Positions 42,874 through 54,400 of a stretch of DNA of 64,000 bases are shown here, one piece after another. Origin of the DNA: Oopsacas minuta (taxonomy: Eukaryota > Animalia > Porifera); contig JAKMXF010000233.1 in the NCBI GenBank assembly GCA_024704765.1, positions 372,001 to 436,000 of the forward strand, written 5' to 3'. The first letter of the stretch is position 1. Each line of letters begins with the position of its first letter. The notes beneath the pieces were generated by a model, which was given only the letters and a program-made list of their open reading frames with translations, was not told the origin of the DNA and searched no databases. Made by a program: the position numbers and the translations under genes.

Positions 42874-43298
42874 TCAATTCATCGGCCTGTATCTCGCTGT
42901 AAACGCGTGTCCTTGGGGTGGATAATGCTGTCTGAACATAGTAAATGTCGGTACTTTATGCCTAGAATAAAATCTATAGAAAGGACTGGGATTAACTGGT
43001 GGGTAAGCGGTATATGGATACCTTGGGAAAAATTGGTTTTGATGGAAAGAAGCTCTAGTGTGAATTGTGTCGCGATGTGGTAACAACACAGGTGGTTTGA
43101 AATTGTTATAAAAAGTGACAGATGCTGTCGGTCTAGGTGGTTTAGGCTCTGGTATCATGGGGAGTGGCGAGGCTTTTGGTACGATTTGTTTGGGGACCGT
43201 AGGCTCTAGCGATTTGGATTTTGTTGTGGCCAAACCTTCCCTGTCTACTATGATAATTCCTTTTTGTTTGGGAATTTTCACTTCAGCATCGAAATCAA

Positions 43299-43368
<70 letters not shown>

Positions 43369-44601
43369 GGTATTATTATTATTATTGTTATCGTTGGCTT
43401 TAAATGAGATATGTAAAGAGGGCTCTGACTCAACACTCGATCCGCTGGTTGTCTCAAGGGTCAAATCGAGACAATTCGGGTTATCTTTGGGTGGCGAAAT
43501 AATATGTTTTGCAACTTGTTTGAGTAAATTATCACATTTCCGTTTCTTATTCGTAATGGATAGTCTTGACTTATTTCTACCGAAATAAGTTCGAGATCTT
43601 ACATGTCTACGAGGTTTTTTAGGACTATTTGTATCTTTGCTATTTCCTTCAAATTTCTCGGTTTTTTCATGCGGTGTTTTTGAAGAACATGGTTGAGGAA
43701 TTTCCTCGTTTCGGAGTTTCTTGTGGATCATTTGTTCTTTATTTTCCAATGGTTGCACGCGTCTCTTCTTCATGGGGGAAATCTGTACAATAGCTTTGCC
43801 TGGCAAAACTTGGTCGGCGCGGAGTGGATCGTTCTCGTATCCAAAAGTCTTTCCGGTAGATTGTGAAATGGGTTTGTTGGGAATTTTATTTTGCCCTTCT
43901 AAAGATAATTGTTCCATTTGTTTGAGAGATGGTTTAGGATCGATTTCCTGTGTCGAAAAATCTTCGTTTTCGACTGAATCCGATTGTTGTGGGGTTATAT
44001 CAAATTCTTGTGAGGAACTTGGTTGTGGTGTTAACTCAGAATTCTCTTCTGTTTCCATGTAGTGTTCCGATTTCTTCTGAATGGCAGATAGCCGTTTGGA
44101 CGTTCTCTGCGGTTTCTCCTCTGGCAATCTTTTGCTCCTACTTTGCTTACCAATATTCGTATTAGGTTTTCCTCGCATAATTATTATATACAATTTATCG
44201 ATAGTGGTGGAGTTGTTATCCACTTTTTTGCTTGTTTTCTCTGTCCAATTTTTGAGATATTCTCCCAGGAGGAATAGCTTATAAACTGCGAATACATTAG
44301 CCAGCGTATCTTCACTTATGCTATCAATATCTTCAACCGATTGGATGTCCGCTCCACTCACCAAATTCAAAATGTCTTTCTCTTTTTGTAAAAGTTTTTC
44401 GAATTCGTAAATAAAATCATTCAATGATTTGTATTGGAAATTCTTTACTTTATCTTGAATGGTTTTGAGGGTAATTCCATCGATGCCATTCTTTGATACA
44501 GCTTGTATCATTGGGAGAGAGTTTGGACCTGTTAGATATTCCATTGTTTTAATCCAGTCAGATATTATCGCAGAGATTTTCTCCTCTTTGCTTACAGACA
44601 T
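42874..44601 (-). CDS. Intronless 575-aa protein: degenerate bromodomain-like N-terminus, disordered middle with poly-Asn, Pro/aromatic-rich C-terminus
   Basis: GITLKTIQDKVKNFQYKSLNDFIYEFEKLL resembles bromodomain helices A-B (PMDL.TI..K+....Y.S..EF..D). Long uninterrupted ORF. Confidence 0.7.
43300..43389. repeat. Coding trinucleotide microsatellite, (AAC)23 plus mostly-AAT tract, giving poly-Asn on the minus strand
   Basis: 23 perfect GTT units at 43300-43368, one GGT, then ATT x5 and one GTT. This encodes 29 Asn in 30 codons. Confidence 0.95.
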
Positions 44602-46755: not shown

Positions 46756-48653
<1,898 letters not shown>

Positions 48654-48721
48654 TTCAAGTGATTTGGTAGATTATTTAATAAGTGTTATTTGCTAGTCAT
48701 ATTGGGTGGGGTGAGATAATA

Positions 48722-48858
48722 CAGTAAACTCCTGTTATAACGAAATGATACTGGGGTCCCCAGCACAGGGGCGTGCTGGCTAGGGACGAGACAACGAGAA
48801 CTCGTCATTCGTTGTCCTTTTTGAAGACCCAGCACTTCGTTATAACAGGAGTTTACTG
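48722..48858. mobile_element. pogo/Tigger-like MITE with family-A-like ends and a different interior
   Basis: TIR CAGTAAACTCCTGTTATAACGAA at both ends. Confidence 0.8.
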
Positions 48859-49854
48859 TGTTTTCATTTGTATATACACATTTCTTCAATCATGATCGTA
48901 TTCATATCATAAATAGTTTGAATATCCATGCTTGTTAACTGTCCTTCTTTCGGACATTTGTTGAGTGGTATGCATAGTTGCCAGGACACTACCTGAGGTT
49001 CATGGATCAGTAGGGGATCCAGAGACTGTGCTAAGAGTTGTATAAGGGGTGCACGGGTGAAAATTGGACCCGATTAAATTTTCAATAATTCATCCTAGCA
49101 TTCGACAAGTGAATTATCTCACAATATTATCTTGTAACATTCCCAATAAGAGCTCATTAAAATATTATACAATTCCTTTTCAATTAAATTTGAATACTCA
49201 ATGAAGTATATAAATATTCCGAGATATTCTCAATACCCATTAAGTGTCCGAATGCCTATAATCTGTACAATAAAGGCCTTATGCGCAATGAAGCCATTCC
49301 CTTTTCAAAAGTTAATCATTCGAAAATTGCTAGAATAAGTGTTTTGTTCACATTTAAGGTAAACCGAATGATAATTCTAATCAGAATAGAGTTTAACCAT
49401 ATACATGCTATCTTACTGAATTGTATTATACTACTACTGGCGATAATTATAGCCAGTTTGTTAGTGACACAGGTAGAAGAGGGCTTGAAACTTATTTTTG
49501 AAGTAAGCATATATTTTTTGCAAATTTTCACATGTAGTTTTACAAATATTCAATGCCCTTACTCATACTACTGGTCATTTTTGGGTGACAGGCCCAGGCC
49601 CAGGCCCGGGGCTACGCTCATGTTCGGTTACCCCTAAAGTGCTCGCTACGCCCAAGCTCAACACCCCCCCCCCGCTCCTAAAATAAGATGAATTTTGCTG
49701 GGTTTTTCCTTTTTGCAAAAATTGGTTAATGGCCAGTTTTTACATACAAATCGCCAACAATGAATATTTGCGTTGAATTCAAAATATTTAATATTCGAGA
49801 ATGATTAAAAGGCTGAATACATACAATTATAGGAATTGATAATTTCTAATAATT

Positions 49855-51159
49855 TTAGAAGTTTGATGTGTTCTTTGATTCGTAGGTCGTGGGGGGAGGC
49901 GGTTTCATAGGGGGATCATCTTGTGTATCGGCGTACAGGATTAGAGAGAGAGTGGAGGGGGTGTAAGGTGGATCGGGTCTCGAAGGAGGATCCACAGGAT
50001 GAGGCAGCGGTCTCCCCTTACGCACTAGGGGACTATTCTTAGGTTTCGGTTTAAACTTCGTATCGGGGGTGTCAGGACGTTTATGTCTAATGAAGCCCCG
50101 GGTACGTTTGAGGTGTGATTTATCCCCCGTATGTCTGAGGGGGGTAGAAGAAGATAGGGGAGGTGGAACAAATAATAACTCGTCCGTATCTTTGCTCCCT
50201 TTCTTCTTCGAGCTTAGTTTAGGCCTGTTTAACTTAGAAGGAGCATGAGGTAGTAGCAATGACTCTTTAGTTGGCGGCGCGGGCGCAGGCCTTGTGGGAC
50301 GTTTAATAGCTCGATGGTGTGGTGTGTAAGAAATATCTGAATGTGAATAATGCCTTTGTTTGATTACCTCCTGTCTTGACAACGGATGTTGTACACTGGA
50401 ATGCTGGGTCAAGGTAAAATCTACGTCATGAAACAATGACTCTAGTTCAGCTGGAGCGCTATCCAAACTAACAGCTGAATCTTGGGCAGCACACGTTTCT
50501 AAACCTGGCCTTCTCAAAGGTGTTGAAAATGTGTCGAATGTGTCCTCGAGGCCATCCACTATATTGATGACGTAACTAGGGAAACACACTTCACGCCCTG
50601 CCACTTCGCCACGTAGCCAGGCCATATTTTGCCCTTTGTGTACATCACCCTCTATTTTGCGGACGAAAATTGTGTCGCCTTTCAAGAAAATTGGACTTTC
50701 CCTCTCTCTCCCCGGTTGAAAGTAATCCTGGTTTGCCTTTACCGTTTGCCCTGGACCAGGAATTTGTAACGGTTCATTGTTCTCACCGAAACTGTCTCTA
50801 CCACGAATAGAATCGGAGATATATACGGGATTATACTTAGAATCTTCGACGATGTGCTCTAATACTCTCTCAACAGGGAGAGGGGAGATAGAATCTTGTG
50901 TAGGGAAGTTTGCGTAGTGCTTAAGTCTGTGAGATTTCATTTTGACAGCGATCAAATACAGTATTAATATCAACAGTACTGTAATGAGGATGAGTAGACA
51001 ACACGTGGCTACGACAGCTACAATAGTTATGCGAGCCTCCACTGGTTGTATTGTGGGTATGACAGCGATTGGAGGTGTTTGTAGGACCTGTGTGGACTGT
51101 GGCGATTGTGATCGGGTTGCTGTGGCTAGAAGTGATCTGCTGCTCGACATTTTTAGCAT
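49855..51159 (-). CDS. Single-pass (type III-like) membrane adaptor with cytoplasmic NPxY, SH3, WIRS-like and Pro-rich motifs, 434 aa
   Basis: Intronless. Short S/T/P-rich N-terminus without a signal peptide, then hydrophobic segment ITIVAVVATCCLLILITVLLILILYLIAV and basic KMKSHRLKH. SH3-like VKANQDY....LKGDTIFV...WLRGEVAGREVCFPSYVI. Confidence 0.8.
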   Translation of the reverse strand: MLKMSSSRSLLATATRSQSPQSTQVLQTPPIAVIPTIQPVEARITIVAVVATCCLLILITVLLILILYLIAVKMKSHRLKHYANFPTQDSISPLPVERVLEHIVEDSKYNPVYISDSIRGRDSFGENNEPLQIPGPGQTVKANQDYFQPGRERESPIFLKGDTIFVRKIEGDVHKGQNMAWLRGEVAGREVCFPSYVINIVDGLEDTFDTFSTPLRRPGLETCAAQDSAVSLDSAPAELESLFHDVDFTLTQHSSVQHPLSRQEVIKQRHYSHSDISYTPHHRAIKRPTRPAPAPPTKESLLLPHAPSKLNRPKLSSKKKGSKDTDELLFVPPPLSSSTPLRHTGDKSHLKRTRGFIRHKRPDTPDTKFKPKPKNSPLVRKGRPLPHPVDPPSRPDPPYTPSTLSLILYADTQDDPPMKPPPPTTYESKNTSNF

Positions 51160-51488
51160 ATGACTATTTCAAATGTTTTACTAATTGGCTTGGAATGTTT
51201 ATACATAATATTACAGTCAACTCCAGTTATATCAAACACGGATATACCGAAATCCCGCTTATACCGAAGTATGATTGTACGAATATGGTCCCAAAGCTTT
51301 TGGATAAAGTTTCATGCAAAACATGCAAAGTTACAATCAGTGACGACAATAAATACCTGAGCGAAAACAAATAATCAAAAGTCTTAATAATATAATAAAC
51401 ATATAAAAGGTGTGAAAAGTTTGAATCGAAAAAAATGGAATAGAAAGTGTGAACAACACTATGAATTATTATTACGTAACTACTGCTC

Positions 51489-54400
51489 TCAGATTATTGT
51501 AGAATCGTCATAGGTTGGGTTATCTGACATCAAATTCAGAATCTGTGTGAACTTAGCGATTTGAGTTTCAAGTTTTAGCTCTCTCAATCGAGTCATTAGC
51601 TATTTTTGAATTATAGAAATATAATATACAAATTCTAGAAACCTTATAATTATAACTCACATTTCCAACAATAGAAGTACCAGCTATCCACCTTAAGAAT
51701 ATTTCTTGTATAGCTGATTCCACAAAGAAAGGAGAATTCGTCTATAAACGAATGGAAAAAATGATAATACTATTACAATTGAAAATATAGTGAAGCTTCC
51801 ACCAAACGGTGTAGCATTTCCTGTACCCTTGGCACTGTTTGTGGAGGTTTCCTGCACCCTTGGCACCGTTTGTGGGGGCTACACTTTAGTTAGTTAAGTT
51901 GCAAAACTCCTTGAATATGTACTAAAATCTGGGGATAATCACATGACACATATTTACACACACAAATGTAATCATCTTACTAATTGCATTTGTCTAAGGT
52001 GCTGATTGAAGTTATATTGTGTTTGTTGAATATTCTGAATATCATCATAATATTTCTTGACTCGCTTCCTAGATGCTTTTGTATCTTTTGCGAATAACAA
52101 TTTATTAGCAGGTGAATCCTAGTAGTGTGAAAATAATTACATAACAATCCAACAAGAGATTGCGAAAAGTCATATTTAGGATGGAATCATACCCAGGTTA
52201 GCTCTTCATCTCTGGTAGAACAACTATCAATTAATCCCTACAAAGAATAAAAGAAAAGGAAAGGCAGTTTATTATAGTATCGTATTACCTCGAATAGTAA
52301 CTAGGGTGATTATTCATATTTTAACACCCTTGAACAGAGGACATAACATATAATCACATACTACATTCCATGAATCATAGCATTCTATACATGAATATAT
52401 TCACCAACTCCCTAACGTGCTTCTGTGACGTGTTAAGTCCCAGTTTTCATGGTTACCTCGTTGGTATTTGGCTACACCCCTCAGCAAGGGAGGTGATAAT
52501 GGAAGGGGGCTACCATTCGAGGGGATAAATCAAAAAATACCTGAGCAATAATTGAGAGAGAAGATTCAACTGGATACGGCATATCTATGTCCAGAATAAA
52601 ATGAGGATTTTTCAATAGATTAACCCAAAATCTGAGGACAAGGCTATTATTTTTCCATGTGTGTATTGTCTCTGGATCTGTTATGCTGTACAACTTTGCC
52701 TTATCGTCTAAGAAGTCCAACAAATGCTTGATTGCAGTAGGACAATCTTGTTGAGCTATTTTATCTGGAAATATTGAGTTCATCATTCCGTCTATATACT
52801 TCTGTAAAATAGCCTAAAAATACAAAAGCAAGATTTAGAATAGGACAGTGGTTCCCAACCCTTTGGTGGGTCGCAGTTCATGATAATTCGGGATAAGAGA
52901 CAAGAGGATCCTTACTTTCGTAGAAAGAAGTTTAGTGAAATATACTTCTGATACAACTTTATGTCTTTCTAACGTGCTTTCTTCAGTACCGGGAATACTC
53001 TAGGGAACAAATTTGTATTAATCATATTTTCACACCTAAAGTTATGTATTAAAGTTATTACGAAATGAAATATCTTTGAGGTATTGTCTACAGATTTCTT
53101 CTTCATAATATCGCTGTACATTGAAGGGAATCTTTCTTTCAAATCTGAATGTTTTAGCAACAGTAGAGATCCGTTTTCAGGGAAACTTATCTAAGTAATT
53201 GAATAATATTAATCTTCAGCTCCTATAATATGTCCTCATGGCAGCTGTTCACATCTTGGACCCTAGGTGATCCACGGACGACAGCAGGGGGTCCACGTCA
53301 CAGGTGAAAAATTAGGGAACCGCTGAAACAGATATAGTCAAATCTCGTTAATACGAGCACCAACAGACGATAAAATATATTCGTATTAACCAGAGCAATA
53401 CCAATGGAATGACCATTATAGGTTCCTGATTTTGTGTAAATATATGTTCGTCTTATCCGTCGTATTTACGAGGTTCCACGGTCATGCCGGATAATCGAGT
53501 GAAATACAGCAGTTATACTTACACGATAAAAGTCGAAATAATGTCTCAGTGTATTTATCCTCCTCCATCCTACATCAATACCAGAAGTCCTATCAATATC
53601 CCTGAAGAGAAGATCGGGTTGTTTGACCTTAGATAGAGTTGGTATCGCTTTAGCCATCGTTTCTTCTCCTGGGGTATATGCTGGGTTGTTAATCACCATA
53701 GAATCCAAGGGGTCTACTTTTCGTTTGAGAGAGATTGCTGGAGAATTTGGTGCATCTTTGGGCTTTACATAGATTAATTCAAGTTTATATGGATCTGAAA
53801 GTAACAAACAAGCAAGTAAACAAACAAACAAATAAACAACTAAACAAATAGACCTGGTTTATCAGAAGCTAACATATTCTTGTTCAATGTGTCAATAATT
53901 TTCCTCTTTGACTGATCAATAGAATCACAGTCTAGCAGTTTAATAATCTCAAAATCATCACCGAAATAGCACAGAATTTCTATTCCTAGAAATAATATAT
54001 AGCAAACAATTGTTGATGATATCAGATACGAATAAGGGGTAACCACATGGGTAATTTTCTACATTCTTATAGTCAATATCGTGGCTCAAAGGTTCGTGAT
54101 AATTACTTCGATATGACCGATGATATTTATGATAATCTGACGGTTTGGGATCATTTTTGTACAATTAAGAGTTCTATGTAACAGGAGTTGACTGTAATTT
54201 ATAATTTCCGGTTAGATATTAGTAAATAGATGGCAGAGGTTTCAACAGGTAGATCTTGTAATGAGATAGACCTATTCGACACTATTCTATTCTCAGATGA
54301 AAGATCGAAAAGTCAGGGACAATCGGACGGAGAGAGACAAGGAAAGCGAGGTGCTACTATGAAGTCATTCTCAGAGGGATTGAAAGAAGGAAGCGATCTA

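Follow-up and report, generated by a model that had tools for sequence, protein, structure and literature searches.

A single-exon glass-sponge gene between plexin and ABI for a predicted single-pass membrane protein carrying a divergent SH3 domain

An unnamed open reading frame (ORF) lies between a plexin gene and an ABI gene of the glass sponge Oopsacas minuta. The locus raises the question of what this ORF encodes and whether its neighbors say anything about its function. The analyzed DNA, hereafter the window, was a stretch of 64,000 nucleotides (nt), positions 372,001 to 436,000 on the forward strand of contig JAKMXF010000233.1, assembly GCA_024704765.1; this accession agrees with that given for O. 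minuta in PMC10280926. A preliminary description had read the ORF as an uncharacterized single-pass transmembrane (TM) SH3 adaptor and had speculated about a role in cell fusion via the WAVE complex. The results point with moderate confidence to a lineage-restricted, single-copy, intronless gene for a type III membrane-tethered SH3 scaffold, designated TM-SH3 in the following.

A conserved gene without named relatives

The ORF list of the window contained an ORF of 434 amino acids (aa) at 49855-51159 on the minus strand, with an in-frame TGA four codons 5' of its first ATG (51159). The second ATG (51150) is the start in the orthologues, which begin with the homologous sequence MS(S/T), and in the GenBank model, resulting in a protein of 431 aa; use of the other in-frame start at 51159 would extend it by Met-Leu-Lys. 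Residue numbers refer to the 431-aa form throughout. GenBank (GCA_024704765.1) models the ORF as a separate single-exon gene without a name.

49855-51150, minus strand: coding sequence of the TM-SH3 protein, single exon, 431 aa plus stop (ORF, GenBank model, orthologue starts, and dN/dS)

ORFs on the opposite strand across this stretch are at most 73 aa long and unremarkable. Rfam and tRNA scans of window positions 48000-53000 yielded no matches, and the Oopsacas genome paper does not mention the TM-SH3 gene or SH3 proteins. The coordinates that the preliminary description had given for the ORF, the SH3 region, and the motifs were exact (NPVY at 50821-50832, FDTFST at 50521-50538).

The TM-SH3 gene is real and is under purifying selection. 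Among 5.8 billion protein clusters, a word search identified eight further ones with proteins of 432-478 aa and 40-58% identity, none of which has a Pfam domain or a name. Together with Oopsacas, they form a family set of nine orthologous lineages, to which all motif counts out of nine refer. The cluster look-up gave 16 sequences, one per assembly, i.e. a single copy in each, and the family tree consisted of three clades and one long branch. All orthologues are uninterrupted ORFs of similar length, whereas the adjoining plexin and ABI genes are interrupted by introns. In codon alignments, the ratio of nonsynonymous to synonymous substitution rates (dN/dS) was 0.14-0.20, and synonymous sites were saturated or nearly so; the closest orthologue pair had a dS of 0.54 and a dN/dS of 0.20. 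Approximately 110 columns were invariant in the alignment of the nine orthologues. The N-terminal 35 residues were least constrained (dN/dS 0.31-0.83).

One orthologue (P0004) is assigned to another glass sponge because its contig stems from run SRR11455651, which is a Vazella pourtalesii metagenome according to the supplement of PMC7426153. The remaining orthologue assemblies have the same gene order as Oopsacas. A HMMER profile of the nine proteins was searched exhaustively against 1.84 billion sequences representing about 15 billion proteins. Matches were obtained with two family representatives, a frameshifted family fragment (P0010), and a C-type lectin (P0011); the lectin was rejected as a relative, as it matched via its TM helix only. 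Neither a word search with residues 100-250 nor a scan of JGI metagenome contigs revealed relatives beyond the family. Because the profile, word, and metagenome searches found nothing further, the family appears confined to glass-sponge-type assemblies at present sensitivity. Most of the protein is disordered, and the lack of detected orthologues in other sponges is therefore weak evidence of absence. Judged by sequence comparison, the family is lineage-restricted and has no detectable relatives in characterized families. Broad orthology to such a family, an outcome that the preliminary description had set against its proposal, was not found in the exhaustive profile and word searches, and the taxonomic distribution it had called for was restricted to glass-sponge-type assemblies. 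Its reading as an uncharacterized adaptor is borne out to the extent that a separate, conserved, unnamed gene with the described architecture exists and lacks characterized relatives. The glass-sponge restriction would fit a syncytium-related role, but a disordered protein that diverges fast would account for it just as well.

Topology, SH3 domain, and tail motifs of the predicted protein

The N-terminal half of the protein includes three segments:

51046-51150, minus strand: residues 1-35, Ser/Thr/Pro-rich N-terminus, predicted to be extracellular or luminal (no Cys; S+T+P fraction 0.42-0.53; predicted local distance difference test score, pLDDT, below 50)
50917-51045, minus strand: residues 36-78, predicted single TM helix with basic cytoplasmic end KMKSHRLKH (AlphaFold2 (AF2) helix, KD19 hydropathy, Lys/Arg cluster)
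50551-50763, minus strand: residues 130-200, predicted divergent SH3 domain (AF2, Foldseek, VIA, family profile versus Protein Data Bank (PDB))

The hydropathy profile of the TM-SH3 protein showed a single hydrophobic segment (residues 36-76, KD19 maximum 3.35) without a second hydrophobic peak, and neither an N-terminal h-region nor a signal peptide was found in it. AF2 modeled residues 36-78 as one helix with pLDDT values of up to 94. In the orthologues, the 15 residues past the hydrophobic window contain 3-6 Lys/Arg, as compared with 0-1 ahead of it. Because there is a single TM segment, no signal peptide, and an accumulation of basic residues on the C-terminal side, an N-out/C-in type III single-pass topology is predicted, and with it a location in the membrane. 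Hydropathy, the Lys/Arg cluster, and the AF2 helix thus agree with the earlier proposal of a short Ser/Thr-rich outside, one TM segment without a signal peptide, and a cytoplasmic remainder. Segment 1-35 is poorly conserved; the Ser/Thr/Pro fraction ahead of the TM helix is 0.42-0.53. It is probably not a receptor domain, because it is too short, too variable, and devoid of Cys.

AF2 predicted a five-strand barrel for residues 130-200 (strands 136-139, 160-167, 178-183, 186-191, and 195-197) with pLDDT values of 80-91 in two independent runs. In a Foldseek search of the PDB, the top 50 matches were all canonical signaling SH3 domains, including those of betaPIX, Lyn, Grb2, and ABI2, with TM scores of at most 0.75 by target. 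VIA gave Z values of 7.5-8.6 and root mean square deviations of 1.7-2.7 Å (about 2 Å) over 52-62 residues, spanning whole SH3 chains. At the sequence level, the Pfam models SH3_1, SH3_2, and SH3_9 produced only noise and no match in any of the nine members even at E 10, no Pfam domain was matched on the whole protein, and a single-sequence search for the domain reached only E ~1. The family profile searched against the PDB, on the other hand, matched almost exclusively SH3 chains at E 0.002-0.05 (Ysc84-type, CD2AP, and betaPIX; best E 0.002). According to these structure models, the domain has a canonical SH3 fold with a divergent sequence. Of the HMM and structure check proposed in the preliminary description, the structural part upheld the SH3 assignment; on the sequence side, the Pfam hidden Markov models miss the domain and the family profile reaches E 0.002-0.05.

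The residues at ligand-binding positions, Tyr143, Trp178, Pro191, and Tyr193, are invariant in the family. The ALYDY-like motif reads A-x-Q-D-Y, the first Tyr being replaced by an invariant Gln, and the P-x-N-Y turn reads F-P-S-Y and is one residue short. In the hhalign alignment, the n-Src loop exceeds that of the ABI SH3 domain by about 7 residues. An origin as a copy of the ABI SH3 domain was rejected: identity was 28% over 39 columns with an hhalign probability of 14%, no closer than between any two SH3 domains.

AF2 gave low confidence for most of the protein, and residues 201-431 are predicted to be disordered. Near-invariant islands are spaced along this tail, and conserved motifs also lie between membrane and SH3 domain. 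Chance probabilities for motifs were taken from 5000 shuffles of the cytoplasmic part as the frequency of at least one match per shuffled tail.

50905-50916, minus strand: Y79-x-x-F82, candidate juxtamembrane YxxPhi-type motif (Tyr79 and Phe82 invariant; 9/9)
50821-50832, minus strand: N107-P-V-Y110, NPxY motif (9/9; chance P 0.046)
50521-50544, minus strand: residues 203-210, invariant D-T-F-D-T core (Asp203, Thr204, Phe205, Asp206, and Thr207), overlapping FDTFST at 205-210
50413-50484, minus strand: residues 223-246, QDSAVSLDSAPAELESLFHDVDFT, most conserved block of the tail (conservation island; LD-like in 8/9)
50272-50304, minus strand: residues 283-293, K-R-P-x-R-x-x-P-x-P-P, candidate class I SH3 ligand RxxPxxP (9/9)
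50209-50250, minus strand: residues 301-314, P-x-x-P-S-K, candidate class II SH3 ligand (PxxPxK), followed by N-R-P-x-L-S (9/9)
50134-50199, minus strand: residues 318-339, G-S-K-D-T-x-E-L-L-F-V-P-P-P-L-S-S-S-T-P block (conservation island with invariant columns)
50065-50079, minus strand: residues 358-362, R-P-D-T-P, first PxTP, proline-directed kinase-type (Arg358, Pro359, Asp360, Thr361, and Pro362 invariant; 9/9)
49930-49989, minus strand: residues 388-407, P-P-S-R-P-D-P-P-Y-T-P-S-T-L-S-L-I-L-Y-A, second PxTP (conservation island; P-x-S/T-P in 9/9)
49891-49905, minus strand: residues 416-420, K-P-P-P-P near the C-terminus (Lys416 and Pro417-Pro420 invariant)

The NPxY motif announced in the preliminary description is embedded in the block K-Y-N-P-x-Y, in which Lys105, Tyr106, Asn107, Pro108, and Tyr110 are invariant; its presence in all nine lineages and its shuffle frequency place it above chance. 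The YxxF motif follows the TM helix by about 10 residues and may have a sorting function. The LD-motif-like sequence LESLFHDV (LExLFxxV) occurred in eight of nine lineages (chance P 0.006) inside the 24-residue block QDSAVSxDSAPAELESLFHDVD, for which AF2 gave no confident structure. In the class I ligand Lys283, Arg284, Pro285, Arg287, Pro290, Pro292, and Pro293 are invariant, and in the class II ligand and its extension the same applies to Pro301, Pro304, Lys306, Asn308, Arg309, Pro310, Leu312, and Ser313.

Some motif assignments were discarded. PDPPYTPS does not qualify as a PPxY (Nedd4/WW) site, as its spacing is P-P-Y and PPxY occurs at this site in 0/9 lineages. The DTFDT and LESLF blocks were rejected as AP2-ear or clathrin-box motifs after inspection by eye, as their spacing does not fit.

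For the scaffold, the following mode of action is proposed. The short mucin-like N-terminus would probably be a glycosylated stub without a ligand-binding domain, and function would reside on the cytoplasmic side. There, the SH3 domain, held about 50 residues from the membrane, would recruit a proline-rich partner, and the 230-residue disordered tail would present invariant docking sites. NPxY and YxxF could dock phosphotyrosine-binding (PTB)-type or sorting adaptors; the tail might further offer the class I and class II SH3 ligands, the LD-like acidic helix motif, and the poly-Pro end, while the two PxTP sites could serve regulation. The class I RxxPxxP might fold back on the SH3 domain of the same molecule as an autoinhibitory latch, and such an intramolecular interaction is plausible. 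When residues 100-316 were modeled with AF2, the two proline motifs had pLDDT values of 62-68 (68 at 283-293) versus 41-49 for the linker, a rise consistent with intramolecular docking on the SH3 domain. Partners, autoinhibition, and a role in cortical actin or trafficking are what we infer from this arrangement.

Some points weigh against this explanation. All of the motifs are short, and the binding partners suggested by them are guesses. The Gln in the ALYDY-like motif and the shortened turn imply that ligand specificity, or even peptide binding itself, could be atypical. The higher pLDDT at the proline motifs could be due to nothing but their conservation, and only two of the nine lineages (Oopsacas and Vazella) are tied to a species.

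The invariant YxxF close to the membrane and the invariant NPxY also lend themselves to a narrower explanation, in which TM-SH3 would mainly be an endocytic or sorting protein, a cargo adaptor cycling via these two motifs whose SH3 domain would bring proline-rich endocytic partners (dynamin-, synaptojanin-, or CIN85-like) to the membrane. It is in line with this idea that the closest SH3 domains by profile (Ysc84-type, CD2AP/CIN85, and betaPIX) belong to endocytic and cortical adaptors, but the structural ranks are nearly tied (Z 7.5-8.6), and SH3 similarity therefore says little about partners. EH, clathrin-box, and AP2-ear motifs were not seen on inspection of the alignment by eye, FxDxF and DPF being absent. 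A mainly endocytic protein is rather unlikely in our view, and this explanation overlaps with a membrane-tethered scaffold rather than excluding it.

Plexin, ABI, and the surrounding locus

The genes flanking TM-SH3 lie on the same strand:

51489-51590, minus strand: last coding exon of plexin with its stop, ending in QIAKFTQILNLMSDNPTYDDSTII (translation and GenBank plexin model; conserved in other loci)
46756-48653, minus strand: ABI gene, next downstream, with N-terminal exon 48321-48653, HHR exon 47597-47887, and SH3 exon 46756-47430 (ORFs and tblastn)

The plexin stop lies 338 nt 5' of the TM-SH3 ATG in Oopsacas and 146-378 nt 5' of it in all six loci compared. The respective intervals are 51151-51590 (minus strand) in the window, 9746-10001 in L001, 9548-10001 in L002, 9639-10001 in L003, 9748-10001 in L004, 732-985 in L008, and 205-444 in L010. 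Such a gap is very tight for a 3' untranslated region plus a promoter. About 90 nt of it in Oopsacas are taken up by one copy (51209-51295) of an interspersed repeat, about 100 bp long, which contains a palindrome and has the core GGGACCATATTTGTACAAT...CGATATAAGCGGG..TTCGATATATCCGTG. At least nine copies with 70-83% identity are present in the window, the others near 2640, 6215, 7554, 11844, 19836, 20620, 58917, and 61235. An upstream exon that would make the ORF part of a known receptor, a possibility named in the preliminary description, is absent, as judged from the conserved Met start, the in-frame TGA upstream, the nearby plexin stop in six loci, and the single-exon GenBank model.

A TAG occurs 1 nt ahead of the ATG in the six loci L001, L002, L003, L004, L008, and L010, which represent three lineages. 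The contexts are TTAGA-ATG, CTAGC-ATG, and TTAGT-ATG; in Oopsacas, a TAG lies 4 nt before the first ATG (window 51160-51166). This TAG is weakly suggestive of a splice acceptor, but an A in position -3 is also what a Kozak-type context would show. The glass sponge Aphrocallistes vastus is reported to use spliced-leader trans-splicing (PMC10282587), so that co-transcription with plexin is possible. Short gap, acceptor-like TAG, and trans-splicing in a glass sponge would all suit an ORF that is not an independent transcription unit, be it part of an operon-like, trans-spliced plexin co-transcript or an exon of a neighbor, serving plexin as an alternative last exon or ABI as its first. The conserved Met start of TM-SH3, the conserved stops of plexin and the ORF, and the conserved Met start of ABI speak for a separate protein instead, the -3 A is ambiguous as stated, and GenBank models a gene of its own. 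We consider a non-independent unit unlikely, and co-transcription would leave the identity of the protein unchanged.

Downstream of the TM-SH3 stop codon, an ATTAAA poly(A)-type signal is found after 63 nt (49792), and 140-280 nt past the stop the otherwise AT-rich spacer contains a GC-rich patch (49575-49718; a run of 10 G, then CCCGGGCC). This patch matched neither Rfam nor tRNA models and occurs once within the window.

The preliminary description had placed the ORF next to ABI. ABI does follow directly downstream on the same strand, and its GenBank model has Pfam ABI, Abi_HHR, and SH3 matches. As evident from tblastn, however, four other loci, the most divergent one among them, have the plexin cytoplasmic exon, TM-SH3, the three ABI exons, an NHL gene, and a gene for a 575-aa protein in collinear arrangement. 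Because this whole block is collinear, the adjacency reflects general synteny and implies nothing specific.

The preliminary description had also matched FDTFST to the WAVE regulatory complex-interacting receptor sequence (WIRS), the consensus of which is hydrophobic-x-T/S-F-x-x (PMC8096436). FDTFST does fit in Oopsacas, and FDTF(S/T)T is present in four of the nine lineages (including Oopsacas); the other five have FDTLS(S/N), in which Thr-Phe is changed to Thr-Leu. A WIRS match was found in 44% of the shuffled tails (chance P 0.44). The conserved element is not a canonical WIRS, because its invariant register, E/D-D-T-F-D-T, has an acidic residue in position 1.

These observations bear on the proposal that TM-SH3 is a WIRS-bearing receptor recruiting the WAVE regulatory complex, of which ABI is a subunit, and driving actin protrusions for cell fusion or bridging in the syncytial glass sponges. 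In its favor, the hexapeptide fits in Oopsacas and three orthologues, TM-SH3 adjoins ABI at every locus examined, the family has so far been seen in glass-sponge-type assemblies only, and a WIRS-independent route is conceivable in which the ABI SH3 domain would bind the invariant RxxPxxP or PxxPxK. On the other side stand the Phe-to-Leu replacement in five of nine lineages, the frequency of the match in shuffled tails, the lack of a hydrophobic position 1 in the invariant EDTFDT, the unspecific adjacency within a collinear plexin–gene–ABI–NHL–575-aa block, and the absence of sequence kinship with Fus1 or any fusogen. The WAVE/fusion role is thus unsupported, and we regard it as very unlikely. 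At a still lower level of probability we place the bolder variant of a membrane-tethered SH3 hub invented by glass sponges and transcribed in an operon-like unit between plexin and ABI, which would couple plexin-type contact signaling to the ABI/WAVE actin machinery via SH3–polyproline contacts instead of WIRS and thereby help to form or maintain cytoplasmic bridges in the syncytial tissue.

Further observations were made on the neighboring genes. In the product of the N-terminal ABI exon (48321-48653, minus strand), some 65 Ser/Thr-rich residues precede the canonical ABI helix as an extension; at four other loci it is conserved with 52-74% identity along the entire 110 residues. Just 5' of the ABI start, the spacer contains a 33-bp inverted repeat with 91% identical arms (48715-48747 and 48833-48865). 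The 575-aa ORF (42874-44601, minus strand) is present in all related loci, where the homologous gene calls have no Pfam family on record; it contains a stretch of about 33 Asn with a single intervening Thr and has a Pro/Tyr-rich C-terminus.

That the ORF might be a chance ORF or a decaying pseudogene with a barrel that is no true SH3, as the missing Pfam match and the low AF2 confidence over most of the protein could suggest, is hardly credible in view of intact, similarly long ORFs in every lineage, synonymous saturation at a dN/dS of ~0.15-0.2, ~110 invariant columns, and structural match lists filled by SH3 chains only.

Comparison with known membrane adaptors and SH3 proteins

Receptors with WIRS motifs (Robo1, DCC, protocadherins, Fat2, and HPO-30) resemble TM-SH3 in being single-pass proteins with a disordered tail, and one Oopsacas hexapeptide fits the motif. 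In the known receptors the motif is conserved across species (PMC8096436), whereas in the TM-SH3 family it is lost in five of nine lineages.

Fus1p of Saccharomyces cerevisiae is a type I membrane protein with a 416-residue tail and an SH3 domain near the C-terminus; a short Ser/Thr-rich outside of the O-glycosylated type, one TM segment, and a long tail with an SH3 domain and proline-rich sequence are features that it has in common with TM-SH3 (PMC2063912). The position of the domain differs: in TM-SH3, SH3 occupies residues 130-200 of 431, about 50 residues past the TM helix, and the motif tail follows it. Only the TM-SH3 family has NPxY and the remaining invariant blocks, and a sequence relationship is lacking, no fungal match having been obtained in the exhaustive profile search or the word searches. 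The likeness to Fus1, which had been drawn by analogy only, is accordingly one of layout and not of homology. Look-alikes in the ESM Atlas were generic SH3 proteins with lead-level scores; they included fungal clusters named 'SH3 domain-containing protein' (0.76-0.78), which may be Fus1-like in layout.

The leukocyte adaptors LAT, PAG/Cbp, NTAL, LIME, and SCIMP are type III proteins with a very short ectodomain and a disordered motif tail without a folded domain; they are palmitoylated at juxtamembrane Cys residues and carry many SH2-docking tyrosines. Topology, short ectodomain, and a disordered tail with docking motifs are similar in TM-SH3. In contrast to LAT and PAG, however, TM-SH3 has an SH3 domain, no conserved juxtamembrane Cys (a Cys near the cytoplasmic end of the TM helix is found in only four of nine orthologues), and only five invariant Tyr. 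The profile search revealed no sequence relationship to this class. Membership was rejected on account of palmitoylation sites, tyrosine content, and the folded domain.

Sho1 is a fungal osmosensor with four TM helices and an SH3 domain, and the SH3 domains of FUT8 and MIA3/TANGO1 are luminal or extracellular, not cytoplasmic. These are likewise membrane proteins with an SH3 domain, and FUT8 SH3 chains were among the structural matches (Z 7.5), but there is no sequence relation to TM-SH3 beyond the SH3 fold.

To our knowledge, a cytoplasmic SH3 domain on a single-pass membrane protein is essentially without precedent in animals, Fus1 and Sho1 being fungal. In TM-SH3, a predicted cytoplasmic, membrane-tethered SH3 domain has been kept, along with a dozen invariant docking motifs, in glass-sponge lineages that are deeply diverged. 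The protein would make a well-defined bait for cortical or trafficking complexes wired differently in the only syncytial sponges, and it would offer a clean case of a signaling-domain architecture arising within one sponge class. What had been known was an unnamed GenBank gene model; what is new by comparison with the systems above is a lineage-restricted variant of the membrane-adaptor theme.

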